41,610 bases of DNA. It comes from Macrostomum lignano (taxonomy: Eukaryota). Location of the stretch: NCBI GenBank assembly GCA_002269645.1, contig NIVC01004575.1:1-41610 (forward strand), given 5' to 3'. Below are positions 5,342-40,815 of the stretch, in pieces. The notes under the pieces are model-generated. The model was not told where the DNA came from. It made no database searches and saw only the letters and a list, made by a program, of their open reading frames with translations. The position numbers were made by a program, and so were the translations under genes. Every line of letters begins with the position of its first letter. Within the stretch, counting starts at the first letter, position 1.

Positions 5342-5566
5342 ATGGCAACTCAGCCAACAGACGAAATCATTGAATGGCATAAGAGATTGGGTGGTGACAA
5401 CTTTGATTACTGGATTCCACCAACTGTAACGGCCTGTTTTACAGAAGAGAAACTAAAAGCATTGAGTGATATTCATTCTTCAGGAAATTTTAGCAACTTA
5501 TCAGAATGTCTAAAAACAAAGCTTCTTCTTGCATTGTGTAATATGCCACAAAGAAACTCTGATCAG
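5342..5566 (+). CDS. NELFA: NELF-A exon 1 (MATQPTDEIIEWHKRLGGDNFDYWIPPTV...KTKLLLALCNMPQRNSDQ)
   Basis: Resembles NELF-A LWLHNKLG..ELWAPPSI...KLKLLLGTLHLPRR; donor CAG|GTAAGT, phase 0. Confidence 0.9.
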
Positions 5567-8439
5567 GTAAGTTTTAATTTTGTAACCTATTATTGTTTAT
5601 TTAAGAGTATGCTTTATAAATGATATAATTATATAGCTTAGCTATATTAAATTTGGCATTAGCTTAGCAAGCAAAAGCTCTGCATATGTAGGCCTATATG
5701 GTCTAAGTCTAATACTATTACTAACAGCTATGTAGATAGAATATAATGTGATTAAAAATGGTTCTGGCCAAAGTTGTTATTCAAGATTGTCATATATGGG
5801 TTATGAGGAAAACAACTTGGCCTAAATTATCTATATTGTCATTGTCTTATTATTGTATTGTGTGCATTTACTTAAATTATCATATTGTGTTATATTGGCT
5901 ATGCAATGATCTCAACTTATTGTGGCAACCATCTGCTTAGAACTTTAGTAATTAGGACTTGGACTAGGACTATTCCTAGTTAAATTCATTGGGTCTGACT
6001 AAATATTTAGTGTCACATTGTATTGCATTATATTAGTTTAATAATTCTATAATAAGAAGCCATTATATATATTTTTAAACTTTAGTCAAGATACTATTTA
6101 ATAGCTATTATAATAGTATATATAAATAAATTTATTCTAAGGTTTTAAATATATTTTTTGTTCAATTGGATTTTTTTTCAAAGAAAGTTGATTTGATAAT
6201 TCAATAAAATTAATTTCTTAATATTTTACTTATTAGGCCCTAGAGTATATCTAAATATACTAAATATTATCTATTATCCATATTTAGTCCTATATAATTA
6301 AAATGCATGTTTGAAATTGATGCACTTTATATATAACAAAATACAACTATAGTTACAATATATAATTAGTAAAGTAAATGGTTTTATACAATTATAGAAT
6401 AAAGTTAGAGGTTGGATAAGATCTTGATCTTCCTATCATTATTCATGATTTTGACTGTTTTCTTAATCAAATCTCAATTAAATCTCAATTTCAAAAGTGC
6501 CATGAGTCTGAGATATAAAATAAAGTAAAATAAAGAGCTTTAGTTTGAATATCAATATTTTGAATATAGCATAGTGTTACAGGATGATGCTTCTGCCCTC
6601 TAGAATCCTACTAATGCCACTAGCTATTATAGGGGTAAACTTCTATCTTCCGAAACAATCTCACCGATTAGCCACTAGCTGTTATAGGTGTTTTGTTCTG
6701 TCCCCTGTAATGATCTCACTGCTATTACCAAAGTTGTAACAATGCTGATTCTTTTTTGAATATCCTATTAGTCCTAACTTCTAATTCCTGACTCTGGTAT
6801 CATTCTGATAGCATTCTTAGTAGCATTCTGGTAGCATTCTTAGTAGGGTTCAGGTAGCATTCATATATTATATGGCCTGAGCAGTCTTCTGGTATGTGTA
6901 CTTTTTCTCCAGTCTAGGCATTACCAAGATTAGAAGGTCACAGAGCTTACTCTTAGTACTCCCTTTGCATGAATTCCCCAGCTTCTCTCAACCTTCTGGC
7001 AAGTTTCTTAAAAACACTCTTACTTATCTTACTAGTAAAATACTTAATGTTTTTAAAAGATCTGAGAACAATTTAGCAAACACTTATTATTGAACTAGCT
7101 ATAAATTATTTAATCGCATGAGCAAGTTGGTTTTCTATTCCTAAACTTTGCTCCTATTTATACCAACTGAAATGTGTATTTTAATAATTTAAGAATATTA
7201 TTAGAAAATATTTAGAAAAGTAAAACAAAATAAATTTTGGGCATAAGTTTATATTTAATTTTTTCTAAGAAACCCTATTACAATAGATTACCTAGACTTT
7301 GATATAAACACATTGAATTAAAAATGAATTTGAATCAAATTAGTACCAAAAAACTCAGTGTCACCCATATTAAGGGATTTAGCCAAGTGTTTAGAAAATT
7401 GATGCACAAGTCACCTAACTAGTAGCAGTAATGCAACCAGAAATTTTTTAAGAAGGAGCAGTTTCCAGAAGGTAAAGACCAGAGAGGGGCAAAGGGGGTG
7501 GCTCTGTTTTTGGCAAAAAATTGCTTGGTCCCCCTTTGATTTTTTCAAGTCTTTTCTCAATGTAGGCACAGCCACCCTCCTGGTTATGCCACTGTGTTGA
7601 ACCTCTTTTTTTAAGCAACACAGAAATAAGGTTGCACATTTTGTGTGCCATGTCAATAGCTTGGTTTTCTTTCTTGCTTGATTGACAAGTTTTATCAAAA
7701 GCTATTCTCTTAAAGATTAGATCTTGCCTGTTTGTTAATGCCAGTTATATTCCAATTTGCTACAATAGTGCTTTAGCAAAAGTACCTATTGGAGTAAGTT
7801 AACAAACCACAGATAGCTATCTGTTGCATTTTCAATATTTTTCTGTGCTATGTTACACAACAGTTGAAGAGCAGGGCAGTATTGTGTGTTTTAGTTGACA
7901 GGTGGCAATGCCAGAAGTATGGTGCATTTATGACCCTTAGGAGTAACATAGTTGTCATTTGAGACTTTGAGCATAGAATTTCAGGACATTTATTATATTT
8001 TCTAGGTTTTCATATTGGTCTTTATCTGTCATTTTAGCCGTTTTTTTTCTAATTTTTCAAATTGTTATTTTTCACATCATTCTGCCCCTTTTCATTCTTT
8101 TGTCTCATGTGTTGCACTTTTTGCATCTGTCATGCATCAATGGGTTTAAAGTAAAATATTACTTAAAATCCATATTGTCAAAGAAGTTCTTTATTCTAAA
8201 GAAAACCAACAAAGATCAGTTTTGTTCAACAGTTAGTTAGCTTTTATTATGATATATACATTTTATATTCAATAAATCAATGTTGAACTTTCATTTGCTA
8301 ATAAGGATAAAGCATCCATGCTAAATAACTAGCTTTGTAAGTAGAATAGCAGAAATATTTTCCTAGATTTCAGTAAATCAAAGGCCAAAACTAAATTGCA
8401 CAAATTAGTACAAACTTGTCTCAATCTCAATCCATGCAG

Positions 8440-8982
8440 TGGCGAGAGCACATTGATGCAATATTCAATGTAGCGCTGAGCGAGGGAAGCGAGAGCTGGG
8501 TCAGGCCCATAGCCGACATGCTGTACACTCTGCCATCACTTGGCTACCTGCGCACAGGCCTGGAAGACAATCCGCTAGTGTCGGAGGCGCTGACCGCTGT
8601 GCAGACTAAACGGCCCTGGCGGCTCAGTTCGCTGCCAATGGAGGCGGAATTTGTCAATCCGGATGTCCTGGCCGACCTTGGCTGTCCAGACGGTCAACAG
8701 CAGCAGCAGCAGCAGAGACATTTTGTAATTGTACGCAAGCCGCGCTCGGTGGTTGCTATGGGGGTCATACTGGAGAAAGCGGCCAGGCAAAGAGACGACG
8801 CCCAAGGCGGCGGCAGGCGCTACACGGCGCCAATTAAGATGCGCAGCTTCGCCAAGAACTGGTTCGACGAAGACGACCAGACTGATAGGCCGGCTAATGA
8901 GTCGTCTGCCGCTTCGTCTGGAGTTCGGCGCCCGGCCAATTCGTCTCTGTCTGCTGGCGGGCATCGGCTAGCGGGATCTCAG
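8440..8982 (+). CDS. NELFA: NELF-A exon 2 (WREHIDAIFNVAL...SWVRPIADML...LPMEAEFVN...HFVIVRKPRS...)
   Basis: Resembles NELF-A DPWVLMVADIL, LPLECQYLN, HFQLKRKPKS; acceptor catgcag, donor CAG|GTCAGG; 181 codons, phase 0-0. Confidence 0.9.
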
Positions 8983-9012
8983 GTCAGGCTGTGTGCGCGT
9001 GTTCTCACTGCA

Positions 9013-9879
9013 CCCCAGATACATATGGATTACCCCAGATACCTATGGATTACCCCAGATACCTATGGATTACCCCAGATACCTATGGATCACCCCAGAT
9101 ACCTATGGATCACCCCAGATACCTATGGATTACCCCAGATACCTATGGATCACTCCAGATACCTATGGATCACCTCAGATACCTATGGATTACCCCAGAT
9201 ACCTATGGATCACTCCAGATACCTATGGATCACCTCAGATACCTATGGATTACCCCAGATACCTATGGATCACCTCAGATACCTATGGATTACCCCAGAT
9301 ACCTATGGATCACACCAGATACATATGGATCACCCCAGATACATATGGATCACCCCACATACATATGGATCACGCCAGATACATATGGATCACCCCAGAT
9401 ACATATGGATCAACCCAGATACATATGGATCAACCCAGATACATATGGATTACCCCAGATACCTATGGATCACCTCAGATACCCTATGGATCACCCCAGA
9501 TACCCTAAGGATTACCCCAGATACCTATGGACCCCCAGATACTCATGGATCACCCCAGATACCCTATGAATCACCTCAGATACTTTATGAATCAGCCCAG
9601 ATACCCTAAGGATTACCCCAGATACCTATGGACCCCCAGATACTCATGGATCACCCCAGATACCCTATGAATCACCTCAGATACTTTATGAATCAGCCCA
9701 GATACCCTAAGGATTACCCCAGATACCTATGGACCCCCAGATACTCATGGATCACCCCAGATACATATGGATCACCTCAGATACATATGGATCACCCCAG
9801 ATACCTTATGGATCACCTCAGATACCTTATGGATCACCTCAGATACCTTATAAATCACCTTAGATACCTATGGATCACA
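9013..9879. repeat. 20-21 bp minisatellite (ATACCTATGGATTACCCCAG), ~42 copies, in NELF-A intron 2
   Basis: Direct periodicity; source of the YLWITPDTYG ORFs. Confidence 0.95.
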
Positions 9880-9919
9880 TTTTTCACCGTTTTCCTCCCA
9901 ATGCGCCCAAACCGAGCAG

Positions 9920-10218
9920 ATGCGCCGCCCCGTGCAGAGCCAGCCGCCGCTGCAGCTGCTGGCCAGGCAGCGCTCATCCGTTCACCCGCTGGGGACGCCG
10001 GTCGGCGGGTCGCACGGCCTGCATCATCAGCTATCGCAGCAGCCGCCGCAGCAGCGCACCACTAAACTGATTGAGCTGTCCGAGCCGCCCGCCATCGGCC
10101 GCGCCGCTAAGGCCCGTCGGCGTCAGGAAGAAGCGGAGCGCCGTCGACAAGAGGAGCGGGCCGCTAAGGAGGAAGCCGCCGCCAAGGCCGCCCAGGCTCG
10201 CGAAGCTGAGGAGGCCAG
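9920..10218 (+). CDS. NELFA: NELF-A exon 3 (MRRPVQSQ...TKLIELSEPPAIGRAAKARRRQEE...)
   Basis: Resembles NELF-A VKLLDISEL...GREAKRRR; acceptor gagcag, donor AG|GTAAGG, phase 0 in, phase 2 out. Confidence 0.85.
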
Positions 10219-10262
10219 GTAAGGACTCTGGGTAGCGCTTAACTGGCGTTTCAAGCTCATTG

Positions 10263-10670
10263 ATCCTTAGTTGCTGGGCCAGCCTCCCAGATCCCCAGTT
10301 GCTAGGCCAGCCTCCCAGATCCCCAGTTGCTGGGCCAGCCTCCCAGATCCCCAGTTGCTGGGCCAGCCTCCCAGATCCTCAGTTGCTGGGCCAGCCTCCC
10401 AGATCCCCAGTTGCTGGGCCTGCCTCCCAGATCCTCAGTTGCTCGGCCAGCCTCCCAGATCCCCAGTTGCTAGGCCAGCCTCCCAGATCCCCAGTTGCTG
10501 GGCCAGCCTTCCAGATCCTCAGTTGCTGGGCCAGCCTCCCAGATCCCCAGTTGCTGGGCCTGCCTTCCAAATCCTCAGTTGCTGTACCAGCCCCCAGATC
10601 CTCAGTTGCTGTACCAGCCTCCCAGATCTTCAGTTGCTGGGCCTGCCTCCCAGATCCTCAGTTGCTCGGC
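10263..10670. repeat. 28 bp minisatellite (CCCCAGTTGCTGGGCCAGCCTCCCAGAT), ~14 copies, in NELF-A intron 3
   Basis: Direct periodicity; its ORFs repeat every 28 aa (three units). Confidence 0.95.
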
Positions 10671-10735
10671 TGAGATTTCAAGACTGAGGCGAATACTCTG
10701 CAGTTTTTACAAATCCAGTGCTCCAACCATTGCAG

Positions 10736-11207
10736 ACAGCAGGCCCTGGCAAAGGAGGCAGAGGAAACTGCCGCAGCGGCTCAAGCAGCCTCCGCCGCCG
10801 CGGTCGCTGCTGCCTCATCGTCGGTCGTGAATTCCAATGCGGCCGGCTCGATGCCCGCATCTGCGGCTGGCCTGCCGCATCTGTCCTCCCCGTTGCTGAC
10901 GCCGTCCGGACCTGCCGGTGCACCGAATTTTGCCGGCCTGTCAACTGCAACGGTGTCGGTGTCGGCGCCATCCAGCGCGCCGTCGGTTGTTCCAGCGACG
11001 CTGCCTTCCCTGCGCCTGACTCCGGCCAGCACCTCGACGCTGACTCAGCCGACGAATCAGCAGCCTGTGCAGCAGCAGCAGCAGGCGGCGCAGCCTCAAC
11101 CGCCCGGTGCATCGGCGGCAGCGGCAACGCCGAGCTACCTGCTCCCGTTCGCGCCAGCCTATGCCGGCCAGATGCAGCAGCCGACGCTGTTTGCCTACAG
11201 CCAGCCT
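10736..11207 (+). CDS. NELFA: NELF-A exon 4, low-complexity A/S/P/Q linker
   Basis: Acceptor ccattgcag in phase 2 continues the frame of ORF 10827; donor CCT|GTGAGT, phase 0. Confidence 0.8.
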
Positions 11208-11330
11208 GTGAGTTATTCCAGATTGTCTCTTAGTGGGAGTTGGATTATGTGATCCTATGTTGTTGTACCTGTTGCTCGAATGTGCGTCTGCCCGCTGTCA
11301 CACCTTCACTGCTAATCACATTTCACTGTC

Positions 11331-12058
11331 TTTTCTGTCAGCTACCCTATCTACTCTGTCAGCTACCCTACCTACTCTGTCAGCTACCCTACCTACTCTG
11401 TCAGCTACCCTACCTACTCTGTCAGCTACCCTACCTCCTCTGTCAGCTACCCTACCTACTCTGTCAGCTACCCTACCTACTCTGTCAGCTACCCTACCTA
11501 CTCTGTCAGCTACCCTACCTACTCTGTCAGCTACCCTACCTCCTCTGTCAGCTACCCTACCTACTCCGTCAGCTACCCTACCTACTCCGTCAGCTACCCT
11601 ACCTACTCTGTCAGCTACCCTACCTACTCTGTCAGCTACCCTACCTACTCTGTCAGCTACCCTACCTACTCTGTCAGCTACCCTACCTCCTCTGTCAGCT
11701 ACCCTACCTCCTCCGTCAGCTACCCTACCTACTCCGTCAGCTACCCTACCTACTCTGTCAGCTACCCTACCTCCTCTGTCAGCTACCCTACCTACTCTGT
11801 CAGCTACCCTACCTCCTCTGTCAGCTACCCTACCTACTCCGTCAGCTACCCTACCTACTCCGTCAGCTACCCTACCTACTCTGTCAGCTACCCTACCTCC
11901 TCTGTCAGCTACCCTACCTACTCTGTCAGCTACCCTACCTACTCCGTCAGCTACCCTACCTACTCCGTCAGCTACCCTACCTACTCTGTCAGCTACCCTA
12001 CCTCCTCTGTCAGCTACCCTACCTACTCTGTCAGCTACCCTACCTACTCTGTCAGCTA
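11331..12058. repeat. 21 bp minisatellite (CTCTGTCAGCTACCCTACCTA), ~34 copies, in NELF-A intron 4
   Basis: Direct periodicity; source of the LSATLPT and LPYLLCQ ORFs. Confidence 0.97.
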
Positions 12059-12089
12059 TTTCATGGCTGGCACTCCATTAACTTTTCAG

Positions 12090-12620
12090 ACTGCGTCTGC
12101 AGCGCCAAACAACATCACGGTTGTGCAGCTGGTCAATCGACCTTACGCGATGCAGCAGCAGCAGCCGCAGCAACAGCAACAGCAGCAGCAACAGCAGCAG
12201 CTCCAGCACCAGCCGCCGCAGCAACAGCAGCAGCTCCAGCACCAGCCGCCGCACCAAGCGGCCGCCTCCCTGTCTGTCCAGCTGACGCCAGAGCAGAGCC
12301 GAGCTGCCGCCGAGCTATTCGCCACGGCCAACAAGCTCACTAAGCCGGAGAAATCAGTCATATTGGCTTTTATTGGCGGCAATAGGACTAATTTAACCCC
12401 CGAGCTCGGCCACCTGGTTCGAATTCACCTGTCCGAATACAAAGAGCGCGTGTTCGATCAGAATCAGCGAGTCTACAAAGACGTCATTGCGGATCAGTAT
12501 TTTCAAATGGACTACGCCAGCGGACACTGGACTATTGTTAAACGGTACAAGGAGGGCGCACCCGAGGTGCTGGCTAGGCTGGACTATCTTCGGCCTCAGC
12601 AGCAGCAGCAGCAGCAGTAA
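12090..12620 (+). CDS. NELFA: NELF-A exon 5, conserved C-terminal domain (LTPEQSRAAAELFATANKLTKPEKSVILAFIGGNRTN...FQMDYASGHW) ending in poly-Q and TAA
   Basis: Resembles NELF-A LTREQMFAAQEMFKTANKVTRPEKALILGFMAGSREN...FEMNYATGQW; acceptor ttttcag; five exons total 2070 nt = 689 aa plus stop. Confidence 0.92.
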   Translation, partial: TASAAPNNITVVQLVNRPYAMQQQQPQQQQQQQQQQQLQHQPPQQQQQLQHQPPHQAAASLSVQLTPEQSRAAAELFATANKLTKPEKSVILAFIGGNRTNLTPELGHLVRIHLSEYKERVFDQNQRVYKDVIADQYFQMDYASGHWTIVKRYKEGAPEVLARLDYLRPQQQQQQQ

Positions 12621-16464: not shown

Positions 16465-16629
16465 TCAGGCCACAGCCTCCGCCGCATTGGGCCCGGCCTC
16501 ATCGTCGTACTCAACCGACGGGTTGCTCTTTAGAAAATGGGCCAGCTGGTTATTGGATAGGCTGGAGTTCATCGACCGGCGATCCATATCAGAGTCAAGC
16601 CCCATCCTGAAAGCGTTCACAACGCGAAC
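16465..16629 (-). CDS. ATP2B (PMCA): PMCA terminal exon T3, canonical type (VRVVNAFRMGLDSDMDRRSM...SVEYDDEAGPNAAEAVA*)
   Basis: VRVVNAF completes the CaM-binding domain (cf. IRVVNAF); acceptor ccccttttcccctctctctctctag, phase 0; not in the ORF track. Confidence 0.88.
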   Translation of the reverse strand, partial: VRVVNAFRMGLDSDMDRRSMNSSLSNNQLAHFLKSNPSVEYDDEAGPNAAEAVA

Positions 16630-18858: not shown

Positions 18859-19323
18859 TCAAACAGCGGGCGGGTCCTCCTCAACGATGGAGGCGCCGCC
18901 GGCGCTGGCTCCCGCGCCGAGCTGCAGGTGGCCGGAGCCGCCTAGCGGGCCAACCCAGTCGATGGAGTGGCTCTTGCCGCCAACTTGTGCGTGCGCGCGA
19001 AACACCCCCCCACTGGCAGCCCCGGCAACGACGGCACTGGCGGAGCTGCCACCAGCCACTGCGGTCACCCTGCCGACTCCGTCTAAGCCGCCGACGCTGG
19101 AATCGGGCAGCGCGGAGGCGGAGTCGGCGTCCTCGGCAGGGTGACCGGCGCCGCCGCTGCCGCAGGCGACGGCATCGTCAGCGGAGGCAAAGCGGGTCAT
19201 GGGCCTGGGGTGGGTGTTCGACCGGCGGTAGAGCAGCATCTGGCGCTGCCGGCGCAGCTCAATGAAATCCTTGCGATCCTCCAAGTCCTCCAGGGTGCTT
19301 TTGAAGGCGCGGACGACGCGCAG
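18859..19323 (-). CDS. ATP2B (PMCA): PMCA alternative terminal exon T2 (LRVVRAFKSTLEDLEDRKDF...EEDPPAV*), 154 aa
   Basis: LRVVRAF is a second copy of the CaM-domain second half, directly after acceptor aaatccacgcag in phase 0; GC3-rich codons. Confidence 0.82.
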   Translation of the reverse strand: MRVVRAFKSTLEDLEDRKDFIELRRQRQMLLYRRSNTHPRPMTRFASADDAVACGSGGAGHPAEDADSASALPDSSVGGLDGVGRVTAVAGGSSASAVVAGAASGGVFRAHAQVGGKSHSIDWVGPLGGSGHLQLGAGASAGGASIVEEDPPAV

Positions 19324-20670
19324 CTGCGTGGATTTTGATGCGGTTCGGAGATCGAGGGGGAAACGTGTTGGCTTGGCCGGTTGGGAGGTGGAGGTTGGCA
19401 CTGGACGCAATTGGGGATTCCCTAGTTACGGAAACTCTGAGGCTGGCGGAGCGGGCTGCCGCAGGTGAGCCGCGCAACTCGCTGGCATCCGACTCGAGGT
19501 CGTGCTTGACTACCGCTGCGCCTTTCCCTCCCTCTCCCTCTCCCCTCAGCCTCTCAGCCTCTCCCTGTCCCCGTCTATCTCTCAGCCTCACTCTAGACTC
19601 TAGCTCTCCCCTTCTTTTTTTCTCTATAAATCCTTTCCCTCTGTATCCGCCTCTATTGTTCTCGTCGCGTCACGCAGGATTTCTGCGCGCTACGCAGGCC
19701 TCTGCGGAGCTGAACCGCGAACTCGCAAGGGCATGGGGGCAAACGGGAGGGCAAAAAGAAGGTCAAACAAAAAGGTGAACAAAAAAGTGCCTGAAAACTC
19801 AAGTGACAGAATGTGTACGAGCATCGCTACTGCCCCCATCTCAATTTAGTAGTAAGAAGCGGGTGCGCGTGTTATCATACGAGTACTATAGAATATAAAA
19901 TCAATGTAGCTAGCTCGTAAAATAAGTTCCGTGTCAACTAAAAATGACTTGTGTTCCACTTAAAGAGCTGTGAAGAAGACTTAAAAAAGTTTAGCAAGTT
20001 AAGCTTGAAATAATATAGCAAAGCACTCGTAGCATTCTAACTTGGCTACTAAATTGGGGGAAAAGATAGCTAAGCAACTTTAAAGCAAAATTCCTATAAC
20101 GGTAGGAAACTTATAGTTATGGTGACTTTTTTTAGAAAATACATGCATAATTCCATTAATCCAACACCATGCTTACACCAACAGCTAAAGGTAATTAGCT
20201 AGCTGATCGTGGAGCAAGGATGCTTACTATATGTACAGTACTAATAAAGATTTAGCAAAGGAATAGTTATCGTCATCGATGCCACTAACTGAAGATAAAG
20301 CAAATTATCGAAAATATCAGAATCATGCAATCAAATGTTAGAACCGAAAGATAAATGAGAATGCTATTGTTACTACTCAGTAATAAGAATATGCGTAGTA
20401 TTTGTTGCAAAATAAACTGAGTTGGAATTTGGAAGCAACAAACAAAATATGCACAAACTGCTACACAATGGCTAATGATATCCGTGTTTCAGTTAAGAAT
20501 CTACCTCGTAGATAAGAGGAACTTATTAGTAACAAGCTTGCCAAAAGAAAAATGCAATCTACTAAACAGGTTTCGAACGGCTAAAATGAAAGAAAGTAGT
20601 GTATACTGCAGTGTGCAGATCCAACACCGACATGTGTCTGAAGTTGGCTGGAGCTGTTCTAGCTACTTAC

Positions 20671-20679
20671 CGTTTGCAT
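20671..20679 (-). CDS. ATP2B (PMCA): Candidate 9-nt PMCA microexon (MQT) at splice site C
   Basis: ~35-nt pyrimidine tract ending tcttgcag, then ATGCAAACG, then GTAAGT; phase 0-0. Confidence 0.65.
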
Positions 20680-22247
20680 CTGCAAGAATAAAAAGGGAGG
20701 GAAGGAGAGAGTGGAGCGGGAGGTACGGTAGGCAATAACGGAGCCATTGGGGAGAATTATACTATTCATTTAAGGGAACACATATTGGAAAAATAAATCC
20801 GGAAAAGTAAAATTAAACTTGAACTATAGTAAGCCGGCTAAACTATATTTAAGCGAATTTTATTTAGCTTACTTTTAATTACCTTTCTAAGTTGAAAGTA
20901 TGACAAAATAATAGATCTTACTTTCCATAGTATAAATGAGAGTAAAAAAATAATACCGATAGAAAAGAATCATATTAATTCAGATAAATTTTTCGAATCG
21001 AAAAAAATATATAGATGGGGTTGATTATATGTAGAAATAAATTTAACTGTAGTCTAAATATAGTTATTTACAAAAATATTTTGTTCGCGATTATAAACCG
21101 GATATGAATTTAATCGTTTACAAAAATATTGTTGCCAATATTAGCAGACCAATCGATAACTATTCAAATAATGGCCAACGTGTTTCAGAAAATTTATTTT
21201 AAAAGCACTCTGCATCTCTACATTCATTATTCTAAACCTAAATGGTGCTTTTTTTCCAGTAAAACAACAAAAATGTCAATTAAATGTTTTAATTTATACG
21301 CTTTCATTGCCGCCACAAATTCACGTCTGCTATATTTAGCTGGTAGAACGAAAAAGAAACGATATTTTCAAACACGAATAGTTTGTTAAATTAAAATTTT
21401 GCGTGCGTTTGTTTTTAGCGCTCGATAGTAAAACGCGCAAAAATCGATAGAAACACGCGTAGAATTTCGCTATTTGACAGTTTCTAATGATCGTTAATTA
21501 TTAAAATACAATAATGTAGTTCGTATAGAGATGCCAGTATATGCGTAAACAAAATAACGTACTGTAGATATAAAGTAGTGCTTTGGACAGTAATAGTAGT
21601 TCAAGATGAAGCGAGACGAGATGACAGCGTTGCTTGTTTTACAATAAGGATAAAAAAAATTTTTATCTTTAAAAAAGATTTTCGATAAACTTTACACCGA
21701 AAATCAAAAGTTACGGTGCAGATTTTTTAAGTAGCTCCAACGCCTTTCTTTGTTCCATTAGTTCTTTTTTATGTTAGAACTACGAGCGTATATAGACACT
21801 ACAAGCAATGGTAAAATTTCAGTAAATATTGAAACCACAAATAGAAGGAAGCAGCCTATATAGCTAATCAAGCGACAACACCGTATATAGTCGAGGTGGC
21901 AGGCTTGGGTTAAACTAAAGCGGTTGAGCGTGTATTTTTAGTATTTATGTTCTGTCAGGATGGGAGAGTAAAACACGACTTGAATTAGAGACTATAACAG
22001 AACTAAGGATATAATCGATATAAATATGACACAGTATAAATAATGATAAACAAGCAATGGGCGTAATATACGAGCTAGTAGTGATGCTAACTGTACGTAT
22101 TTGATAAACAAAGCATGCTAAAATTGTTTATTGATTTTGTTAGTTTGAACAAAACATGATTAACTATATAAGCTACACACGTCGCTATAAGCTTTTAGGT
22201 AGCCGCTGGGCCGAACTCGATGAGTTTTAAGAGTTGTTTCTTGACTC

Positions 22248-22481: not shown

Positions 22482-22924
22482 CTGTACAGTTGTTGTTGTT
22501 GACAAATGAAAGGTGAGGGAAATTGTAAAGGGGTTTGCGGATTGGGCGCGTCTTATTAGCACATGTATTGAGTCGGGTTGGCCGCTACTAAACCTCAATC
22601 GAATGAATAAGCCGATGAGTTTTCACTTAATCCGCTAGCGCTCTTAGGGCATCCAAGCGCTCTGGAAGAAGACCCCTTCCCGTGAACTTACGAGAAAATG
22701 ACAATTAAGCCTGATCAGATCAGTGCATACAAACAATTGGGGCTGTTAAAGAGAGACCTTTTAACAATTGGATAGGAATCATTTTAAGTGTTAGTAACTG
22801 CGATTTAGTGTGTCAAAAACAGCACTCAAGGTGTAAAAAACAATGACGCCTCGATCGGGTGTTAGGAATGGCACTGCAGGTACCAACGATGGCATTTTTG
22901 TGTCTACCCTTCTTCTGTCAGGAA

Positions 22925-23695
22925 GAATAAAGCTGTTTGAGCGTTGACACTTAATTGAGATGTCAAGAAGAATACCTGTTTGAGTGCTGACACTTAATTG
23001 AGATGTCAGGAAGAATACCTGTTTAAGCGTTGACACTTAATTGAGATGTCAGGAAGAATACCTGTTTGAGTGTTGACACTTAATTGAGATGTCAGGAAGA
23101 ATACCTGTTTGAGTGTTGACACTTAATTGAGATGTCAAGAAGAATACCTGTTTAAGCGTTGACAATCGAGATGTCAGGAAGAATACCTGTTTGAGTGTTG
23201 ACACTTAATTGAGATGTCAGGAAGAATACCTGTTTGAGTGTTGAAACTTAATTGAGATGTCAGGAAGAATACCTGTTTAAGCGTTGACAATCGAGATGTC
23301 AGGAAGAATACCTGTTTGAGTGTTGACACTTAATTGAGATGTCAGGAAGAATACCTGTTTAAGCGTTGACAATCGAGATGTCAGGAAGAATACCTGTTTG
23401 AGTGTTGACACTTAATTGAGATGTCAGGAAGAATACCTGTTTGAGTGTTGACACTTAATTGAGATGTCAGGAAGAATACCTGTTTAAGCGTTGACAATCG
23501 AGATGTCAGGAAGAATACCTGTTTGAGTGTTGACACTTCATTGAGATGTCAGGAAGAATACCTGTTTAAGCGTTGACAATTGAGATGTCAGGAAGAATAC
23601 CTGTTTGAGTGTTGACACTTAATTGAGATGTCAGGAAGAATACCTGTTTAAGCGTTGACAATTGAGATATCAGGAAGAATACCTGTCTGAGCGTT
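22925..23695. repeat. 43/39 bp minisatellite (GAGTGTTGACACTTAATTGAGATGTCAGGAAGAATACCTGTTT plus a 39-bp variant), ~18 units
   Basis: Direct periodicity with two interspersed unit types. Confidence 0.95.
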
Positions 23696-25927
23696 GAAAA
23701 TTTGCAATCTATACCTAGTCAAATGACAAAATTTCAAGTATCAGTACGCTGGTAACAGCCCCGGTGTCAAGAATGGCGCTGTAGGTGTCAGGAACACCAC
23801 TTTAAGGATTCAGTGAGGTTAGAGAGGTTGGTTCCCAATAGTGAGTTTGCTAGGCTAGCAGATAAGATCACTCATCGGAGAATGCATCCGATTTCGGCTT
23901 AAAAAATTGGCTCGAAAAACCGAATAAAAAATGTCATATGCAGGAAAATGACGTATTGCTATAAGATACATGTGGTAATTTTGTAAGTGCGCTATTTAAA
24001 ACCCGCATGCCACATGACTGAGGTATTTTTAATAACTACGTAGTAGCAGTAGAAGAATGGAATTTTATTAAAAAAACCGGCCTTCTAATTTTTATTGGCC
24101 AGAGATTTATAACATGTCTTAGTGTTGCGTGTTGAGCGATCCATCCTTCTACTTGAAGTTCTGTATACTCAAACCCATAACAATATATATTGGTAGTAGT
24201 ATTGGTTTTAACTTATTATATATATAAACTTACAGTGGTTACATATGGTAGCGATATAGATGGCATAAATATATTACTATATAAATATCGTATTGACAGC
24301 ACATTTTCTTGTGATCTTTTAGATATCTATATTTTAGATATTTATGTATAAGTTTGAATACGATTGTTTTGTTATACTGGTCTATCAACCATGCAGTTTT
24401 ATTAGGAAATGTTTAATAAAGAAACAATTTTCTACTTGTATTTTGCTTCGATTAAGATAAATGTGATATTTATCATTGAGTATAGTTAGATTACAAACTA
24501 CGTAACAATATTCCAGGTTAATATGAGCATGACGAAGCAAAACGTGTGCAATGGTTTCAGATGAAATCAAATCAATTTGTCACTATATAATAGCAGATTG
24601 CTAAACATATTTGTTAGTTTAATGAAAAGTTGAGCTATCTATTTAGCATTATTTAAATTATAAAGTGCAAATTGCAAAGAATCTGATTACTTTTAATTAT
24701 AAGTCTAAGTTTTGCGAAATAAGGTGCTACGGTGAGTAACGATTTGCAGTTAACAGAAAAAGTAAAAACAGGGAACGACTGGTTTATATAATACGGGCAA
24801 CTCGATGGGATTACTAAACTCGGACGGCACGGCGCGGTTTAAGAAATGTTTTTTAAACACTTTTGTTAATTTTACATCGCTTCGTTTCTGAATATTTTTA
24901 TTAATTATAATAAACTATAGCTAATCACCTAACAACTTTTAATGTAGCTATCGATAATGGAAACGCAAAACTTAAATTTGCTACGTCAAAGCGAAGCTAA
25001 AATAATACGCTTGTTATGTAATCATTTTTAAAAGCGAACATTAAATTGCTGGCAGTTTTTTAGCATGCGGTAGTTGATTATTCGGATATGCGAGTATTAA
25101 TCGTGGTACAACAGTAAATATGATGGATAGTATATATAAGAATATTTTTTAATAATAGTATTCAATATTCACAATTATATTTGTTACGCCCCCCACTTTT
25201 CATTTTAAAAAATTCGATTGACAAATATTCAGCTGTGATTTTAATCTACATGTATCTACTACAACCTTAAGACTTTTACTCATTCGTTACTTTTATTTAC
25301 ATTTATAACGATATAACTGCATATATATAACTCTATAACTTATTTAAACTGTGACTATATTTATCACTAAACATTGTATTGTCCAGATGAAATCCAAATC
25401 CGTTAAATCATATTTAACGAACGCGGATTTAGCTTTCAATTGTGGATTATAAGACGCCATGATATACATGTTCTATGTAGTTATTGATTTTAATGACTAT
25501 TGTTTAATTGATATACATGTGCATAATACATTCAAAGCTTACTTAATTAAACACGAAAGGCCGTAGGGGAGGCACAGACTTGTGAGGGTGGACTTGGGGG
25601 CAAGAAAGATTATTATATGGGTCCTTGGGCTGTGTGTACAAAGCCAATGTACAAAGGCTTGGTGAGTGGGGTGGGCAGAGAATAAACTTGTTTTGGACGC
25701 ATACAGAATTATATATGTACGGCTCTGGGTGGTTTTGGGTTAGGGGTAGGGCCTGTATGTACAATTGACACTATAGTAGCTATAATAGCTCGTACCTCCA
25801 AAGTCTAAACTCCAGTACTCCAGCCCCAATTTTCATAGTAAAAAATGCAGCTAAAGCAAATGAATTAACTAGAGCAAGTTGATGTTATTTTTAAAAAGAA
25901 TAAGTAAAAAATACAGAATTTGCTTAC

Positions 25928-27409: not shown

Positions 27410-28904
27410 ATTAGGATTATGCTTAATTATCGACTCATTGGTTTTAGAAATCTATTTTGTTACTCTGTTACACATTTGCATGTAACAGAATCCTAAATTT
27501 TGTGACATTAGTTTCCCGTCCATCTACTTGAGTAGTCCTTGAGTCCCGACTGCGATTGTTGCAGATGGTCACACAGATAAATCAAAGCCACTAGGGCTCA
27601 CTGGGCTTGACTGCCATTTTGTTGTGGTTTAGCACAGATCTAGGCGTTATAAGCTGAGCATAGCAAATAATACGGTTAGTGATTGAAAGCACTTTATTAA
27701 ATACAAACTCAAATACAGACAAGTTCATCGTTTTAATTTCAATATTACCAAAATTACCAAAATTGATATAGAAAAATAATCAATCTATCTCCAACAGACA
27801 TTATTAATTTAAATTACTATTGTTTTTTTAAAATAACACTCACTTTACAATCAAGGTGGAAAATAAAGCAAAGTAAAAATAATGCTTAACTAAGCGCATA
27901 TTAAATTGGCACACAGATCGGCAATAACAAAAATCAAGATTGGCACGGGTCCAGCAAATTAAAAAAATAATCGATTAGCGAATCAAAGTAAGAAAAGATG
28001 GTTAACAAATTGCATTGCAGCAGCGGCGGCTATAAGCTTCTCATTAAAGTAGTTTGTAATATTTATTCTATTACGTAATCTAATTACGTAACCTTGATAA
28101 AGAATAAAAGTTTTGTTTAAATGCACCAGTTAAGTTTTGTAAAAAATGCGGATTAGGTCATTTTTCCGATCGTGCAAACACAGGTTGTTGTCTTTCACCA
28201 GGAAAATGACACCGCATAATTATTAATGATGATATAAATTTTATAAAACGTTTAACGTGATTTGAACTGAAATTTAATTTCGAACAGAAATCCAATTTTC
28301 CGTATAATTCACATACTTTTTGACAGACTAAAAGAAGCTCCAAAGAGAAGAATGCTTTCATTCCTACTGAGCAGTAGTAGTGTATGGCGCATTGTGCAAG
28401 CAAAAATGAAATTAGATATTGATCGATAGAATGGACCCATTCTGTAACCGCCACCCCCGTCCCGAACCCTCCAATCCCCAGCGAACGACCCCCGCGGACA
28501 CAAATTAGATTTTTTAACAACCTTAGCTTCGCGGAAAAGCTTGGCTAAAGTCGCCATGCCAGCGACGCTAAATCGCCTGACGGCCGCCAATTGGGCCGGG
28601 GACAGCGGCTGCAAATTGGAGCGAGAATTGCGGATTGCAACGGTCTCAGGCGTCTCCTTCTCTCTCAGCTTACTCCACATTCCGGTGTAAGGCATGATGG
28701 GACCAGAAAGAATGTGTGTGGATGGGAGCAACATTTCTGCGCTCTTCCACGTCGACACAAATTGGATATGAATTTTTCATTTACAATTATTTGTACTCTC
28801 TTTCTCATTTCTTCTCTTTTCTCTCGTTTCCTATCGCGCTCTGCTCCATTCATTCCCCTTTAACTCTCTTCTCTCCTCTATTCATTTTCCTTTAACCCTC
28901 TACT

Positions 28905-29502: not shown

Positions 29503-29694
29503 CTGCGTCTGCAGCCGAGCCAAGCCTCGGATCCACAACACCTGTCCCTTCTTGTTAATATCCGATTCAACATCCGTGAGCGAGGCCATCTGGTCGTACT
29601 GCTCCTCCTCGAGGATCTGTTCGATCTCCTGTTCCGTGCTGCCGCCAATCTCCAGGCACGAAGGCAGGACAGAGATTGGCACTGTGATCACCAA
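29503..29694 (-). CDS. ATP2B (PMCA): PMCA exon: end of TM10 through the first half of the CaM-binding domain (LVITVP...KKGQVLWIRGLARLQTQ)
   Basis: Matches RRGQILWFRGLNRIQTQ; acceptor gccgcag, donor CAG|GTAAGA; 64 codons, phase 0-0 (splice site C). Confidence 0.93.
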
Positions 29695-29783
29695 CTGCGG
29701 CAATGGCGCGTTTGGGATGAATAGAAATCATTGTTTCATTTGTGCAACTTTCTATAGATCTCTATAAATACTTTAGCGGCAAA

Positions 29784-30425
29784 CCCCATCCAAGTAACTT
29801 GTGTCAGCTGACAGAACCCCATCCAGGTAACTTGTGTCAGCTGACAGAATCCCATCCAGGTAACTTGTGTCAGCTGACAGAACCCCATCCAGGTAACTTG
29901 TGTCAGCTGACAGAACCCCATCCAAGTAACTTGTGTCAGCTGACAGAACCCCATCCAGGTAACTTGTGTCAGCTGACAGAATCCCATCCAGGTAACTTGT
30001 GTCAGCTGACAGAATCCCATCCAGGTAACTTGTGTCAGCTGACAGAATCCCATCCAGGTAACTTGTGTCAGCTGACAGAATCCCATCCAGGTAACTTGTG
30101 TCAGCTGACAGAACCCCATCCAGGTAACTTGTGTCAGCTGACAGAATCCCATCCAGGTAACTTGTGTCAGCTGACAGAATCCCATCCAGGTAACTTGTGT
30201 CAGCTGACAGAACCCCATCCAGGTAACTTGTGTCAGCTGACAGAACCCCATCCAGGTAACTTGTGTCAGCTGACAGAACCCCATCCAGGTAACTTGTGTC
30301 AGCTGACAGAACCCCATCCAGGTAACTTGTGTCAGCTGACAGAACCCCATCCAGGTAACTTGTGTCAGCTGACAGAATCCCATCCAGGTAACTTGTGTCA
30401 GCTGACAGAATCCCATCCAGGTAAC
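29784..30425. repeat. 33 bp minisatellite (CCCATCCAGGTAACTTGTGTCAGCTGACAGAAY), ~19 copies
   Basis: Direct periodicity; palindrome TGTCAGCTGACA in each unit. Confidence 0.97.
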
Positions 30426-30458
30426 TAAGAATCGAAAAAAGTTTGCATTCTCTCTCAC

Positions 30459-32283: not shown

Positions 32284-32941
32284 CTGCGCAGGTTGAAGGT
32301 GATTATAATGTTTTCATTTTTAGCCGTTAGGCACTGTAACGCATTTCGCTCAGTGGTCCTTGGTTGACCGCGTCAAGGGAATTCATCTCGCGCAAACTTG
32401 TCAGCCAGACTCATGAGCTAAGGTCTGCGATGCTACACACCGGCAACCCCTCTATTCTGATGCAGGAATGGCTGGGGAACCTTCTCCAAGCTGACTCACA
32501 AGCCGATCCAAGGGATTTGCGTACCGCATGTTTTCAAGGCAGTCCGGTAGTCCTAGGATTGCTGGACTTGACTTTTCACGTAGCCTTGTTGCATGGGTAC
32601 GGGTTATCCAGGAAGTGTATCTTTGCGTACCAGGTGCCGGGGACAGGTGCTACTTTAAGGTCTGACTCAAACAGGCTAAGCGACCAGTCCACAAACCGCG
32701 GAAACAGCTTCCTTGTTTCTTTCAAGGGCCCCACGTAGTAACGCCTAAGACAGAACACATGCTTTTTAGATTTACAACGATCCATATGTCTATTTTTTAA
32801 TTCTAAAAATGGAAAAACGCTTCCTTTTCCTTCTAACTGAGAATTGTCCATACCCTTTAGGTAGAATGCTTCGGATTTGAGGACTGAATAAGCTCTGCAT
32901 TCATCCCAATAACAAGCGAGGAATCTACCGGTTATTCTCAC

Positions 32942-33258: not shown

Positions 33259-33722
33259 CTTTGAAGCCTGCCACCTTACTAAACAAACAAAGTCACTTCC
33301 TTTGAAGTCTGCCGACTTACTAAACAAACAAAGTCACTTCCTTTGAAGTCTGCCGACTTACTAAAAAAACACGCTTATTCCCTTTGAAGTCTGCCGTCTT
33401 ACTAAACAAACAAAGTCCCTTCCTTTGAAGTCTGCCGACTTACTAAACAAACACGCTTATTCCCTTTGAAGTCTGCCGACTTACTAAACAAACAAAGTCA
33501 CTTCCTTTGAAGTCTGCCGACTTACTAAACAAACACGCTTATTCCCTTTGAAGTCTGCCGACTTACTAAACAAACAAAGTCACTTCCTTTGAAGTCTGCC
33601 GACTTACTAAACAAACACGCTCACTCCCCTTGAAGTCTGTCGTCTTACTAAACAAACACGCTCACTCCCTTTGAAGTCTGCCGTCTTACTAAACAAACAC
33701 GCTCACTCCCTTTGAAGTCTGC
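33259..33722. repeat. 41 bp minisatellite (CTTTGAAGTCTGCCGACTTACTAAACAAACAAAGTCACTTC), ~11 copies, two unit variants
   Basis: Direct periodicity. Confidence 0.95.
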
Positions 33723-34915: not shown

Positions 34916-35118
34916 CTGCGGTAGAATTATGATTAACGAGTTCGAGTTAATTCAGGCAATCATTGTTGCTTTGATTCGATGAGTCCCAGGTTCGATTCTT
35001 ATTTTGGAAGCAAAATATTGTTTTTTCATGTGGTAAAAACTTAAGGAGAGTTGAAGTGTGGAATTTTAGCTCGTAGTAGTATTTGACGTTTTCAATGTGA
35101 TTCTGAAAAGAGGACACG

Positions 35119-35440
35119 GGATTTCGGACAGGGATTTCGGTCAGGGGATTTCGGACAGGGGATTTCGGACAGGGGATTTCGGACAGGGGATTTCGGACAG
35201 GGGATTTCGGACAGGGGATTTCGGACAGGGGATTCGGACAAGGGATTTCGGACAGGGGATTTCGGACAGGGGATTTCGGACAGGGGATTTCGGACAGGGG
35301 ATTTCGGACAGGGGATTCGGACAAGGGATTTCGGACAGGGGATTTCGGACAGGGGATTTCGGACAGAGGATTTCGGATGGGGATTTCGGACGGGGATTTC
35401 GAACAGGGGATTTTGGACAGCGGATTTCGGACAAGGGATT
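35119..35440. repeat. 13-14 bp minisatellite (GGGGATTTCGGACA), ~23 copies
   Basis: Direct periodicity. Confidence 0.95.
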
Positions 35441-36225: not shown

Positions 36226-37422
36226 GATTGCTTTATAAATAAACCGATAAGCAAACACTTCAAGCATATATTCGAAGGCACAGTTTGCTAGGAAATGGCG
36301 GAACAAAACTATACCAGAGCTCGTGCAAAAAGCATTAAAATTTTCAGAAGATCACTCAGTACACTTCAAATCGATATAGTGTTGAAAATTTCTCTGTGTC
36401 CGCTGCTAATTCACGTCTAGAAATCATTTAAATAGAATTGTAAATAATACACAGCAGGAATAACAAGCTACTTTAAGTAGCTTTACTGCTGTTTTAGTCG
36501 GAGAAAACACAAAGATGTTTCACGCTTCAACAATATAAATTATTCTAGTTGGAGATTTAGCCGCGCCTCAGTCAGACCTGAGCTGAGAACTAATATTGAG
36601 CACAGGGAAGGGGGGGGTGAGCTGCATGCGTTCGAGGCGTTAGTTGAAGAGCAGACAAACTTATGCTTGGGTCCGGGAGGGGGGAAAATTCCCGTGTGGG
36701 GATATTTTTAGCCAGCGGATCGGTAATTAATTCGGCATCAGAATTAAGGGATAACAAAAACTGCATGCTGGGGGGGGGGTGTTCAGCCTGAGACGCCGGA
36801 AAAAAGATTCAGAAGAGAGAGAGGGGAACGGAGGAGGCAGAGCCAACGAAGAAGGTGTGCGTGCAGTCGGTAGAAAATTAATCCCTCGACTCATTCCAGG
36901 GCAACCAGGCTTTGCTGCCGCATGGGCTGGCAGGTTGCGATGGGGGGAGGGGGAGAATTCGCATGGGATTTCTAGCCCACTGCCTGGCCAAATAGGCCAT
37001 GAGGAAAATGTTCGGCCAGCAAGGCTTGAGCTTGTTCCGTTTTCCCATCCCGTCAGGGCCATTCTCGACGCATAATATTGCGCCAAAATCATTATTTCCC
37101 TTTCATTTGGCTACTCAACTCAGCTGCCAATGCCGGGGGTGGGGCGACAGAGCAGACAAAGCTGTCGAGAATAGGATTAAATCCCCGCTGCTGCCTTGCC
37201 CCATCCTAAATCCCCGAGCACACTCGAATGAATCAGCTGCTGCTAGTTGGGCCAAAATCTTCTCAAGTAATTTGCCTTGATTTGACTTTGGCAGGAATCT
37301 GGGCCTCCGCTTGGCTGTGCTGCATCTATTGCCTATGGGTACCTCATTTATTGCCCACAGGCCAATAAGCTGCTTCTGAAACCAATTCTGCGCATTGCGG
37401 ATTGATGTTGGAATTGTTATTT

Positions 37423-38548
37423 CTGTGCCATGTCTGTGTCTGTGTCTGTGCCTGTGTCTGTGCCATGTCTGTATCTGTATCTGTGCCATGTCTGTGTCTG
37501 TGTCTGTGCCTGTGTCTGTGCCATGTCTGTATCTGTATCTGTGCCATGTCTGTGTCTGTGTCTGTGTCTGTGTCTGTGCCATGTCTGTATCTGTATCTGT
37601 GCCATGTCTGTGTCTGTGTCTGTGCCTGTGTCTGTGCCATGTCTGTATCTGTATCTGTGCCATGTCTGTGTCTGTGTCTGTGTCTGTGTCTGTGCCATGT
37701 CTGTATCTGTATCTGTGCCATGTCTGTGTCTGTGTCTGTGCCTGTGTCTGTGCCATGGTGTATCTGTGTCTGTGTCATGTCTGTGTCTGTGTCTGTGCCT
37801 GTGTCTGTGCCATGTCTGTATCTGTGTCTGTGCCTGTATCTGTGCCATGTCTGTGTCTGTGTCTGTGTCTGTGCCTGTGTCTGTGCCATGTCTGTGTCTG
37901 TGTCTGTGCCATGTCTGTGTCTGTGTCTGTGTCTGTGCCATGTCTGTGTCTGTGTCTGTGCCATGTCTGTGTCTGTGTCTGTGTCTGTGCCATGTCTGTG
38001 TCTGTGTCTGTGCCATGTCTGTGTCTGTGTCTGTGTCATGTCTGTGTCTGTGTCTGTGTCTGTGCCATGTCTGTGTCTTTGTCTGTGTCTGCGCTAGTGT
38101 CTGTGTCTGTGTCTGTTTATGTGTCTTTTTCTGTGTATTTTCCTGTAATTTGACGGTCTGTGCCTGTATGCTGATGGTCTGTACCTGTATGTTGATGGTC
38201 TGTACCTGTATGTTGATAGTCTGTACCTGTATGTTGATGGTCTGTACCTGTATGTTGATGGTCTGTACCTGTATGTTGATGGTCTGTGCCTGTAATTTGA
38301 CGGTCTGTGCCTGTATGCTGATGGTCTGTACCTGTATGTTGATGGTCTGTGCCTGTAATTTGACGGTCTGTGCCTGTATGCTGATGGTCTGTGCCTGTAT
38401 GCTGATGGTCTGTGCCTGTATGCTGATGGTCTGTGCCTGTATGCTGATGGTCTGTGCCTGTATGCTGATGGTCTGTGCCTGTATGCTGATGGTCTGTGCA
38501 TGTATGCTGATGGTCTGTGCCTGTATGCTGATGGTCTGTGCCTGTCTA
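37423..38548. repeat. Compound array: hexamer-based TGTGTC/TGTATC/TGTGCC blocks punctuated by CATG (37423-~38115), then a 21-bp repeat TGTGCCTGTATGCTGATGGTC (~38145-38548)
   Basis: Direct periodicity; source of all the HRHRHR and CVCVCA ORFs. Confidence 0.95.
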
Positions 38549-39857: not shown

Positions 39858-40815
39858 GTGTTTTCGGGTGACGAGAGCTGTATTAGAGGCCATAAAACAG
39901 TCATGAAACAGATAAGCGGAGAGAGCAGCGCCCTTGGTACAGTGTTTTCGGGTGACGAGAGCTGTATTAGAGGCCATAAAACAGTCATGAAACAGATAAG
40001 CGGAGAGAGCAGCGCCCTTGGTACAGTGTTTTCGGGTGACGAGAGCTGTATTAGAGGCCATAAAACAGTCATGAAACAGATAAGCGGAGAGAGCAGCGCC
40101 CTTGGTACAGTGTTTTCGGGTGACGAGAGCTGTATTAGAGGCCATAAAACAGTCATGAAACTGATAAGCGGAGAGAGCAGCGCCCTTGGTACAGTGTTTT
40201 CGGGTGACGAGAGCTGTATTAGAGGCCATAAAACAGTCATGAAACAGATAAGCGGAGAGAGCAGCGCCCTTGGTACAGTGTTTTCGGGTGACGAGAGCTG
40301 TATTAGAGGCCATAAAACAGTCATGAAACAGATAAGCGGAGAGAGCAGCGCCCTTGTACAGTGTTTTCGGGTGACGAGAGCTGTATTAGAGGCCATAAAA
40401 CAGTCATGAAACAGATAAGCGAGAGAGAGCAGCGCCCTTGGTACAGTGTTTTCGGGTGACGAGAGCTGTATTAGAGGCCATAAAACAGTCATGAAACAGA
40501 TAAGCGGAGAGAGCAGCGCCCTTGGTACAGTGTTTTCGGGTGACGAGAGCTGTATTAGAGGCCATAAAACAGTCATGAAACAGATAAGCGGAGAGAGCAG
40601 CGCCCTTGGTACAGTGTTTTCGGGTGACGAGAGCTGTATTAGAGGCCATAAAACAGTCATGAAACAGATAAGCGGAGAGAGCAGCGCCCTTGGTACAGTG
40701 TTTTCGGGTGACGAGAGCTGTATTAGAGGCCATAAACAGTCATGAAACAGATAAGCGGAGAGAGCAGCGCCCTTGGTCAGTGTTTTCGGGTGACGAGAGC
40801 TGTATTGGAGGCCAG
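39858..40815. repeat. 84 bp minisatellite, ~11.4 highly homogeneous copies, in a PMCA intron
   Basis: GGTACAGTG recurs at 84-bp spacing (39936, 40020...); ORFs repeat every 28 aa. Confidence 0.97.

Follow-up and report, generated by a model that had tools for sequence, protein, structure and literature searches.

The 41,610-nt stretch analysed here at its full length (the window) is Macrostomum lignano contig NIVC01004575.1. On its minus strand it carries most of a gene for a plasma-membrane Ca2+-ATPase (PMCA), whose first ~270 codons lie past position 41610, and one of the introns of this gene contains a 9-nt element, ATGCAAACG, at 20679-20671, which encodes Met-Gln-Thr and is flanked by splice signals. 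Translation of the open reading frames (ORFs) in the window showed the DKTGT phosphorylation site, the hinge and transmembrane segments TM7-10, and the ORFs contain the P-type ATPase core and the Cation_ATPase_C region that define a PMCA. A protein search with a 413-residue query from the 3' exons gave 5953 matches at E<=1e-30, all of the PMCA type (PF00702/PF00689/PF12424); this word-indexed search returned proteins of at most ~1.75 times the query length, and full-length PMCAs and the window's own protein were never among the matches.

The pump's calmodulin-binding domain (CaMBD) is split between exons. The upstream constitutive exon (29503-29694, minus strand), identified by its sequence and translation, encodes the first half of the domain (...LVITVPISVLPSCLEIGGSTEQ...KKGQVLWIRGLARLQTQ) and ends in phase 0 at 29503 with ...GQVLWIRGLARLQTQ, followed by the donor GTAAGA at 29502-29497. 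The QTQ/GT boundary is universal in animal PMCA genes, as all 115 of 115 intron read-through fragments break there. Two alternative tail exons follow on the same strand. The first (18859-19323) starts with LRVVRAFKSTLED behind the phase-0 acceptor cacgcag/CTG and encodes LRVVRAFKSTLEDLEDRKDF... to its own stop; the second (16465-16629) starts with VRVVNAFRMGLDS behind the phase-0 acceptor ctctctag/GTT and encodes VRVVNAFRMGLDSDMDRRS...EAVA and then a stop. The PMCA CaMBD has been defined by Pattern 1 (GQILWxRGLxRxQTQ) and Pattern 2 ([ILVM][RK]VVxAF) (PMC12693652), and the window gene has both, with GQVLWIRGLARLQTQ at 29.5 kb, LRVVRAF at 19.3 kb and VRVVNAF at 16.6 kb. The second tail exon, at 16629, is of the type that follows MQT or MQA in flatworms (compare LKVVNAFRMGLDSR in P0007). 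In the annelid Lamellibrachia (L008), an L-type tail exon (LRVVRAFRRTLEDIED) at 32922 and an I-type tail exon at 36663 are arranged in the same order as in the window, and the first tail exon of the window is homologous to this LRVVRAFRRTLEDIED exon. Because the annelid has identical tail types in an identical order, the comparison indicates that the arrangement of an L-type followed by a V/I-type alternative last exon is old in protostomes.

The 9-nt element lies in the ~10-kb intron between the CaMBD exon and the tail exons, 8.8 kb from the upstream exon and followed by a 1.3-kb intron, and homologous 9-nt exons or inserts occur at the same coding junction elsewhere. The minus-strand reading of the site is cccgctccactctctccttccctccctttttattcTTGCAG/ATGCAAACG/GTAAGTagctag. 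A long, CU-rich polypyrimidine tract (20685-20722) is located inside an AG-exclusion zone of 80 nt, and TGCAG (20680-20684) provides a UGC at -5 to -3 (20684-20682) and the acceptor AG (20681-20680). The donor at 20665-20670 is the consensus GTAAGT, which is also found in both trematode copies described below. Pyrimidines occupy 36 of the 40 positions before the acceptor, with four UCUC/CUCU motifs, the nearest upstream AG is 80 nt off, and the local intron has 34% G+C. Comparison of all acceptors of the gene showed that this one is the most extreme, with the strongest pyrimidine tract and the longest AG-exclusion zone. Arrangements of AG, 3-30 nt and GTRAGT occur 68 times on the two strands of the window, but the microexon alone has at least 22 pyrimidines in the 28 bases upstream (27/28). 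The sequence-only reading had placed a 9-nt Met-Gln-Thr exon with these signals at these coordinates, and it was correct; the site is the sole one of its kind in the window.

The same reading had taken the exon as part of the calmodulin-regulated pump gene, in frame and inside the CaMBD, and this is supported. Since the junctions of the CaMBD exon and of the tail exons are all in phase 0, the nine bases read as M-Q-T in frame with either tail. Inclusion gives the junctions CAGACGCAG/ATGCAAACG/CTGCGCGTC or CAGACGCAG/ATGCAAACG/GTTCGCGTT, and skipping gives CAGACGCAG/CTGCGCGTC and CAGACGCAG/GTTCGCGTT. The microexon occupies the place of the variable exon of PMCA site C, a phase-0 junction after QTQ inside the CaMBD; splice site C has been located within this domain (PMC12693652). 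As a separate observation, TTGCAG/ATGCAAACG/GT is similar to the upstream exon's 3' end, CTGCAGACGCAG/GT (20671-20684 and 29503-29514, respectively, minus strand). ATGCAAACG and CTGCAGACG are identical at 7 of 9 positions, with [L/M]-Q-T repeated, and the resemblance is weaker in Dicrocoelium (5/9). This could hint that the microexon arose when the last part of the upstream exon was duplicated locally.

Cross-species comparisons showed the same short insert at the same junction. In Dicrocoelium dendriticum, the annotated protein (P0012) reads ...WVRGVNRIQTQ-MQA-MKVVDAFRMGL, and MQA is encoded by a free-standing annotated 9-nt exon (L001, 47320-47328), ...cgacaacTTGCAG/ATGCAGGCT/GTAAGT, or in its wider context ctcatctcgacaacTTGCAG/ATGCAGGCT/GTAAGTgtt. 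This exon is located ~140 nt past the CaMBD exon and 23.6 kb ahead of the tail exon, and its acceptor, TTGCAG, is identical to that of the window microexon. The genome of Paragonimus kellicotti (GCA_014220965.1) carries an unannotated ATGCAAGCT exon (L005, 21716-21724), tttgtag/ATGCAAGCT/gtaagt, in the context ...ccttactttgtag/ATGCAAGCT/gtaagtacc, ~207 nt past the CaMBD exon and before the tail exon. The annotated protein (P0104) is without the insert, and the omission of this exon from the gene model is likely an annotation gap. At the protein level, Hymenolepis microstoma (P0007) has ...WLRGLNRLQTQ-MQT-LKVVNAFRMGLDS, with the three residues identical to the product of the window microexon and with the tail type encoded by the window at 16629. 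In other trematode-type proteins (P0006 and P0119), QTQ is directly followed by MKVVDAF and the insert is absent. The 16-nt pattern AG-ATGCARRCN-GTRAG was found once each in the window and in the Dicrocoelium and Paragonimus loci, always on the coding strand and always in the site-C intron, whereas 1e-5 to 3e-4 occurrences are expected per strand from base composition (3e-4 in the window). A chance arrangement is excluded by this cross-species test. Conservation across species, on which the sequence-only reading had staked its proposal, thus speaks for the exon.

A profile built solely from two real insert-bearing junctions was run exhaustively with HMMER against 1.84 billion representatives and found two further proteins (P0238 and P0239), both with QTQ-MQA-MQVV[HQ]AFRMN. 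In one of them the insert is present at ~390 in a 1.3-kb spliced transcript (L003, ENA ERZ27284377), and in the other at ~3891 in a 4.5-kb contig with short introns (L004, Logan ERR14173670), where the MQA codons (ATGCAGGCC) lie within a single exon. Because the former is a spliced transcript and the latter has the codons inside one exon, the insert-bearing pump is a regular product in these two sources. Taken as a whole, the comparisons indicate that several animals normally make a PMCA with three additional residues after QTQ. In L004, which comes from a deeply divergent animal, ATGCAGGCC is fused to both neighbouring exons, so that both flanking introns are lost and the microexon is kept, and the insert is constitutive there. 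A junction-profile search with four bait rows, in which MQT was put into real junctions, returned intron read-through ORFs alone.

The motif by which PMCA contacts calmodulin is of the 1-18 type (2KNE peptide); among its distal positions, V14 and F18 show the highest conservation and sensitivity, and Phe was identified as a principal anchor by Phe-to-Val substitution and truncation (PMC12693652). The residues at positions 12-18 of the skipping forms are L/V12-R13-V14-V15-R/N16-A17-F18, and the inclusion forms have M12-Q13-T14-L/V15-R16-V17-V18-x-A-F21. Counted from the Trp anchor, inclusion moves the Phe from 18 to 21 and brings a Val onto 18, as the sequence-only reading had counted. That reading had also described a shift of the anchor register, of which one part holds: the Trp-to-Phe spacing changes from 1-18 to 1-21, but the hydrophobic register is largely kept. 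All insert-bearing sequences found have the common register M12-Q13-T/A14-h15-[RKQ]16-V17-V18-x-A-F21, in which hydrophobic residues are retained at 12, 15, 17 and 18 and the distal anchors are downgraded (V14 to T/A and F18 to V). Thus, the insert appears less to shift the whole register than to weaken the distal anchors in a tuned manner.

The proposed mechanism starts from the equivalence of the site with vertebrate splice site C, where the phase-0 junction after ...LQTQ cuts the helix of calmodulin binding and autoinhibition into its two halves. Inclusion would add Met-Gln-Thr to the 1-18 motif after residue 11 and before residue 12, whichever tail exon follows. Positions 12 (Met), 15 (Leu/Val) and 17-18 (Val-Val) would be hydrophobic, Val14 would be replaced by Thr and Phe18 by Val, and the Phe would stand at 21. 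As its distal anchors are downgraded, the insert-bearing pump would be expected to show a different, probably weaker, binding to the calmodulin N-lobe, to its own autoinhibitory docking site, or to both. The predicted result is an altered basal activity and altered activation kinetics, an outcome analogous to the difference between the vertebrate a and b variants. We assign a probability of roughly 0.7 to the reading of the nine bases as a genuine, conserved PMCA site-C microexon that alters the calmodulin switch when spliced in. Its parts are not equally firm. The exon is very probably genuine in the sense of being spliced into at least some transcripts of M. lignano; given a genuine exon, its inclusion is probably alternative rather than constitutive; and the odds that inclusion measurably alters calmodulin regulation are put slightly above even. 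No description of a 9-nt exon at PMCA site C was found in the literature searched. Such an exon is already present in the public gene models of two flatworms; it is real, conserved and mechanistically suggestive, and it adds no new principle.

The acceptor also bears on how inclusion might be controlled. A UGC near the acceptor, an extended AG-exclusion zone and an extended, UCUC-rich tract constitute the cis-code of microexons under the eMIC domain, which arose in bilaterian ancestors and whose programme is limited to neurons in non-vertebrate bilaterians (PMC8797185). The sequence-only reading had linked the UGC and the pyrimidine tract to eMIC control, a statement backed by this source, and the window exon shows all three elements of the code. 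Its length of 9 nt, a multiple of 3, is within the 3-27 nt range of eMIC exons, and the Dicrocoelium exon has a UGC at -5, an AG-exclusion zone of 95 nt and CUAAC at -50. The window and Dicrocoelium exons fit the code well, and the Paragonimus exon partly. The neural microexons controlled by eMIC/SRRM3-4 (Srrm234) are likewise 3n in length and up to 27 nt, with an AG-exclusion zone, a UCUC-rich tract and a UGC, and the likeness extends to the gene, since PMCA controls neuronal Ca2+ handling. However, the donors of fly eMIC exons are reported to be weak (PMC8797185), whereas that of the window microexon is a strong consensus. PMCA is not among the eMIC targets named in the main text of the same paper (PMC8797185). 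Downstream GCAUG elements of the Rbfox type were found only at background frequency and are not evidence. A regulated, possibly neuronal, inclusion is plausible from these elements. That activators of the eMIC/Srrm234 type would act through this acceptor is the less confident step, and control of the microexon by an eMIC factor is possible, at odds clearly below even.

Several observations weigh against the interpretation as a conserved, regulated microexon. Both flanks are present in the type-I PMCA locus of Clonorchis (L007) and in that of Lamellibrachia, and no credible 9-nt exon was found in either of them, relaxed criteria included. The Clonorchis type-I gene is the nearest named relative of the window gene, and the exon is absent or unrecognisable there. 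The distribution of the microexon is patchy, because the exon is missing or unrecognisable in these two loci; the Taenia locus (L002) and a cestode contig (L006) do not contain both flanking exons and say nothing on its presence. The position in the intron also differs, at 8.8 kb from the upstream exon in the window and at 0.14-0.2 kb in the trematodes. The Paragonimus exon is without a UGC by its acceptor, so conservation of this element is not universal. JGI metagenome and metatranscriptome contigs were scanned twice with IUPAC patterns for the spliced junction QxQ-MQ[TA]-x[RKQ]V[VI], and none was found. Finally, the argument for inclusion in M. lignano itself is drawn from conservation only.

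The age of the exon was considered with the relationships of the genes. Over 424 aligned columns, the window PMCA is 76% identical to the Schistosoma and Clonorchis type-I PMCAs and 70-74% identical to annelid-like and insect sequences and to those of trematode type II. Neighbour-joining groups it with the two type-I trematode sequences at 83% bootstrap, suggesting that the window probably derives from a flatworm and that its gene stands nearer to the type-I copy. Trematodes and a cestode carry their annotated MQT/MQA exons in type-II genes. With this tree taken as correct, the microexon would predate both the split of the PMCA paralogues and the divergence of trematodes and cestodes, and a loss would have occurred at least in the Clonorchis type-I gene. 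The PMCA of L004 is 51-63% identical to every group. As it fits none of them, a distribution wider than flatworms is possible.

The alternative that concerns regulation is that of a genuine exon with constitutive inclusion in the window species, the skipping form being confined to other lineages. The very strong pyrimidine tract and the perfect GTAAGT donor would suit a constitutive exon, the three codons fused into the exon of L004 are always present, and the Dicrocoelium and Hymenolepis gene models include the insert. However, very short exons are poorly recognised by unaided exon definition, and a 9-nt exon between introns of 8.8 and 1.3 kb is a poor substrate for it. The acceptor has the architecture of regulated eMIC-type exons, the Paragonimus model omits an exon that its genome carries, and the trematode-type proteins P0006 and P0119 are without the insert. 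Gene models with the insert (Dicrocoelium and Hymenolepis) and without it (Paragonimus) bear on whether both isoforms arise from one gene, although they are suggestive only. Constitutive inclusion is considered unlikely, but it is the best placed of the alternatives. A splice-like motif that is unused in M. lignano, either a chance arrangement or the decayed relic of a flatworm exon, is improbable. It draws on the same reliance on conservation for the use of the exon in this species and on the lack of such an exon in the nearest named relative, the Clonorchis type-I gene. Yet every signal is intact and at its optimum (36/40 pyrimidines, AG, an open 3n frame and GTAAGT), the 16-nt pattern is common to two trematode loci against its expectation of 3e-4 per strand in the window, and a relic is not expected to keep a perfect donor, a perfect acceptor and the coding sequence ATG-CAR-NCN.

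Two further alternatives were weighed. Read-through of the donor gives MQTVSS-stop, as the sequence-only reading had stated, and the nine bases could then begin an alternative terminal exon, ...LQTQ-MQTVSS-stop, truncating the pump in the middle of the CaMBD. The in-frame stop 9 nt past the donor allows this, and truncated, constitutively active PMCA tails are conceivable. However, the peptide is all that holds of that proposal, and the truncated tail is unsupported: the stop is not conserved, the corresponding read-through being stop-free in Dicrocoelium (MQAVSVCTG...) and Paragonimus (MQAVSTSTR...); no AATAAA, and one AATAAG only, occurs within ~360 nt downstream; and the perfect GTAAGT speaks for use as a donor. 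A terminal exon is therefore given very little weight. Still less is given to a recursive-splicing ratchet point, which would remove the 10-kb intron stepwise and leave nothing in the mRNA. The site does lie deep in a long intron with a strong acceptor and a strong donor. However, a ratchet point juxtaposes AG with GTRAGT, and here nine bases separate AG from GT; with A as the first exon base, no 5' splice site is rebuilt, which excludes a ratchet of this kind. In the trematodes, just 140-207 nt separate the homologue from the upstream exon, a distance that calls for no ratchet, and the nine bases are translated in several species.

The preferred reading, a site-C microexon, was compared with known systems. 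In vertebrates, site C of the PMCA genes (ATP2B1-4; variants a/b/c/d) uses the same junction and likewise alters the helix of calmodulin binding and autoinhibition in its distal half. Vertebrate site-C inserts are exons of roughly 87-178 nt that also begin with Met, QTQ-M[DE]VV (P0042, P0045, P0052 and P0268). They replace the distal helix by a paralogous M[DE]VVxxF, in which the Phe stays at 18, and mostly change the frame of the tail, whereas the window microexon adds 9 nt (3 residues), keeps the downstream sequence and displaces the Phe to 21. Ecdysozoans have a 69-nt cassette that, like the window microexon, is an in-frame insert at the identical QTQ junction, before IRVVNAFR. However, it encodes 23 residues of unrelated sequence without a Met-Gln start, and no homologue of it was detectable in the window. 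Because this 23-residue cassette sits at the same QTQ junction, the comparison indicates that site C repeatedly attracts in-frame inserts. The insect cassette reads VIGGELQERLIPVPYSKxxTDQA, with a relative, MSEHLIPVPMSKQPTDQA, in the nematode Trichuris (P0017, P0018, P0023, P0032 and P0060), and it is tandemly duplicated in an isoform of Drosophila kikkawai. Schistosome micro-exon genes (MEGs) are flatworm genes that depend on the accurate splicing of very short symmetric exons. They encode secreted proteins and consist of many tandem microexons, whereas the window gene has one microexon and encodes a conserved pump with housekeeping and regulatory roles. A classification as a schistosome-type micro-exon gene was rejected, as the single microexon stands among exons of normal size.

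The intron that holds the microexon contains another candidate, an 87-nt in-frame cassette at 28522-28608 (minus strand), aatTTGCAG/CCG...AAG/GTTGTT, which encodes PLSPAQLAAVRRFSVAGMATLAKLFREAK. It has a PKA-like RRFS site and is loosely like a tick alternative tail, ...SLAQLRRFSAAS; its donor is weak, no cross-species match to it was found, and its status as an exon is speculative. Minisatellites of high identity crowd the introns of the PMCA gene, with units of 14-125 nt and up to 98% identity, and 26 TRF rows were obtained in the window. Examples are located at 29782-30426, 39858-40814, 22916-23697, 37422-38545, 33259-33722 and 35112-35440. One of the minisatellites, a 33-nt unit in 19.5 copies, makes up most of a short intron between two coding exons. 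Two neighbouring genes were recognised. A NELF-A homologue on the plus strand (~5342-12620) has its N-terminal domain split over the ORFs at 5342 and 8416, below the Pfam cut-off, and a C-terminal part rich in poly-Gln; minisatellites at 9011-9878, 10262-10670 and 11334-12058 lie in open frames of this region. A uDENN/DENN-domain gene is found on the minus strand at ~1106-1632.

In animal cells, PMCA extrudes Ca2+ with high affinity, and the speed and strength of its activation by calmodulin are set by the distal half of the CaMBD, the region that site-C splicing varies in vertebrates. The 3-residue insert is a minimal natural experiment in this half, in which the Trp anchor and the helix are kept while the identity and spacing of the Val14/Phe18 anchors are changed. 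The gene models of parasitic flatworms can miss the exon, as that of Paragonimus does, and the exon is a rare case of a microexon conserved across deep divergences, whereas the fly and mammalian microexon programmes have almost nothing in common (PMC8797185). If its inclusion is regulated, invertebrate cells could retune Ca2+ clearance without a change of the tail. A stronger proposal, which we consider less likely than not, is that of an ancient regulated microexon that predates both the flatworm paralogue split and the trematode-cestode split, may extend beyond flatworms in view of L004, is neuronal under eMIC/Srrm234 and makes a weaker Val18/Phe21 motif. If this were true, the exon would belong to the few microexons with so deep a conservation and would be a natural spacing mutant for how the calmodulin N-lobe releases PMCA autoinhibition, and it would represent an invertebrate answer to the tuning problem that vertebrates solve by the a/b tail swap.

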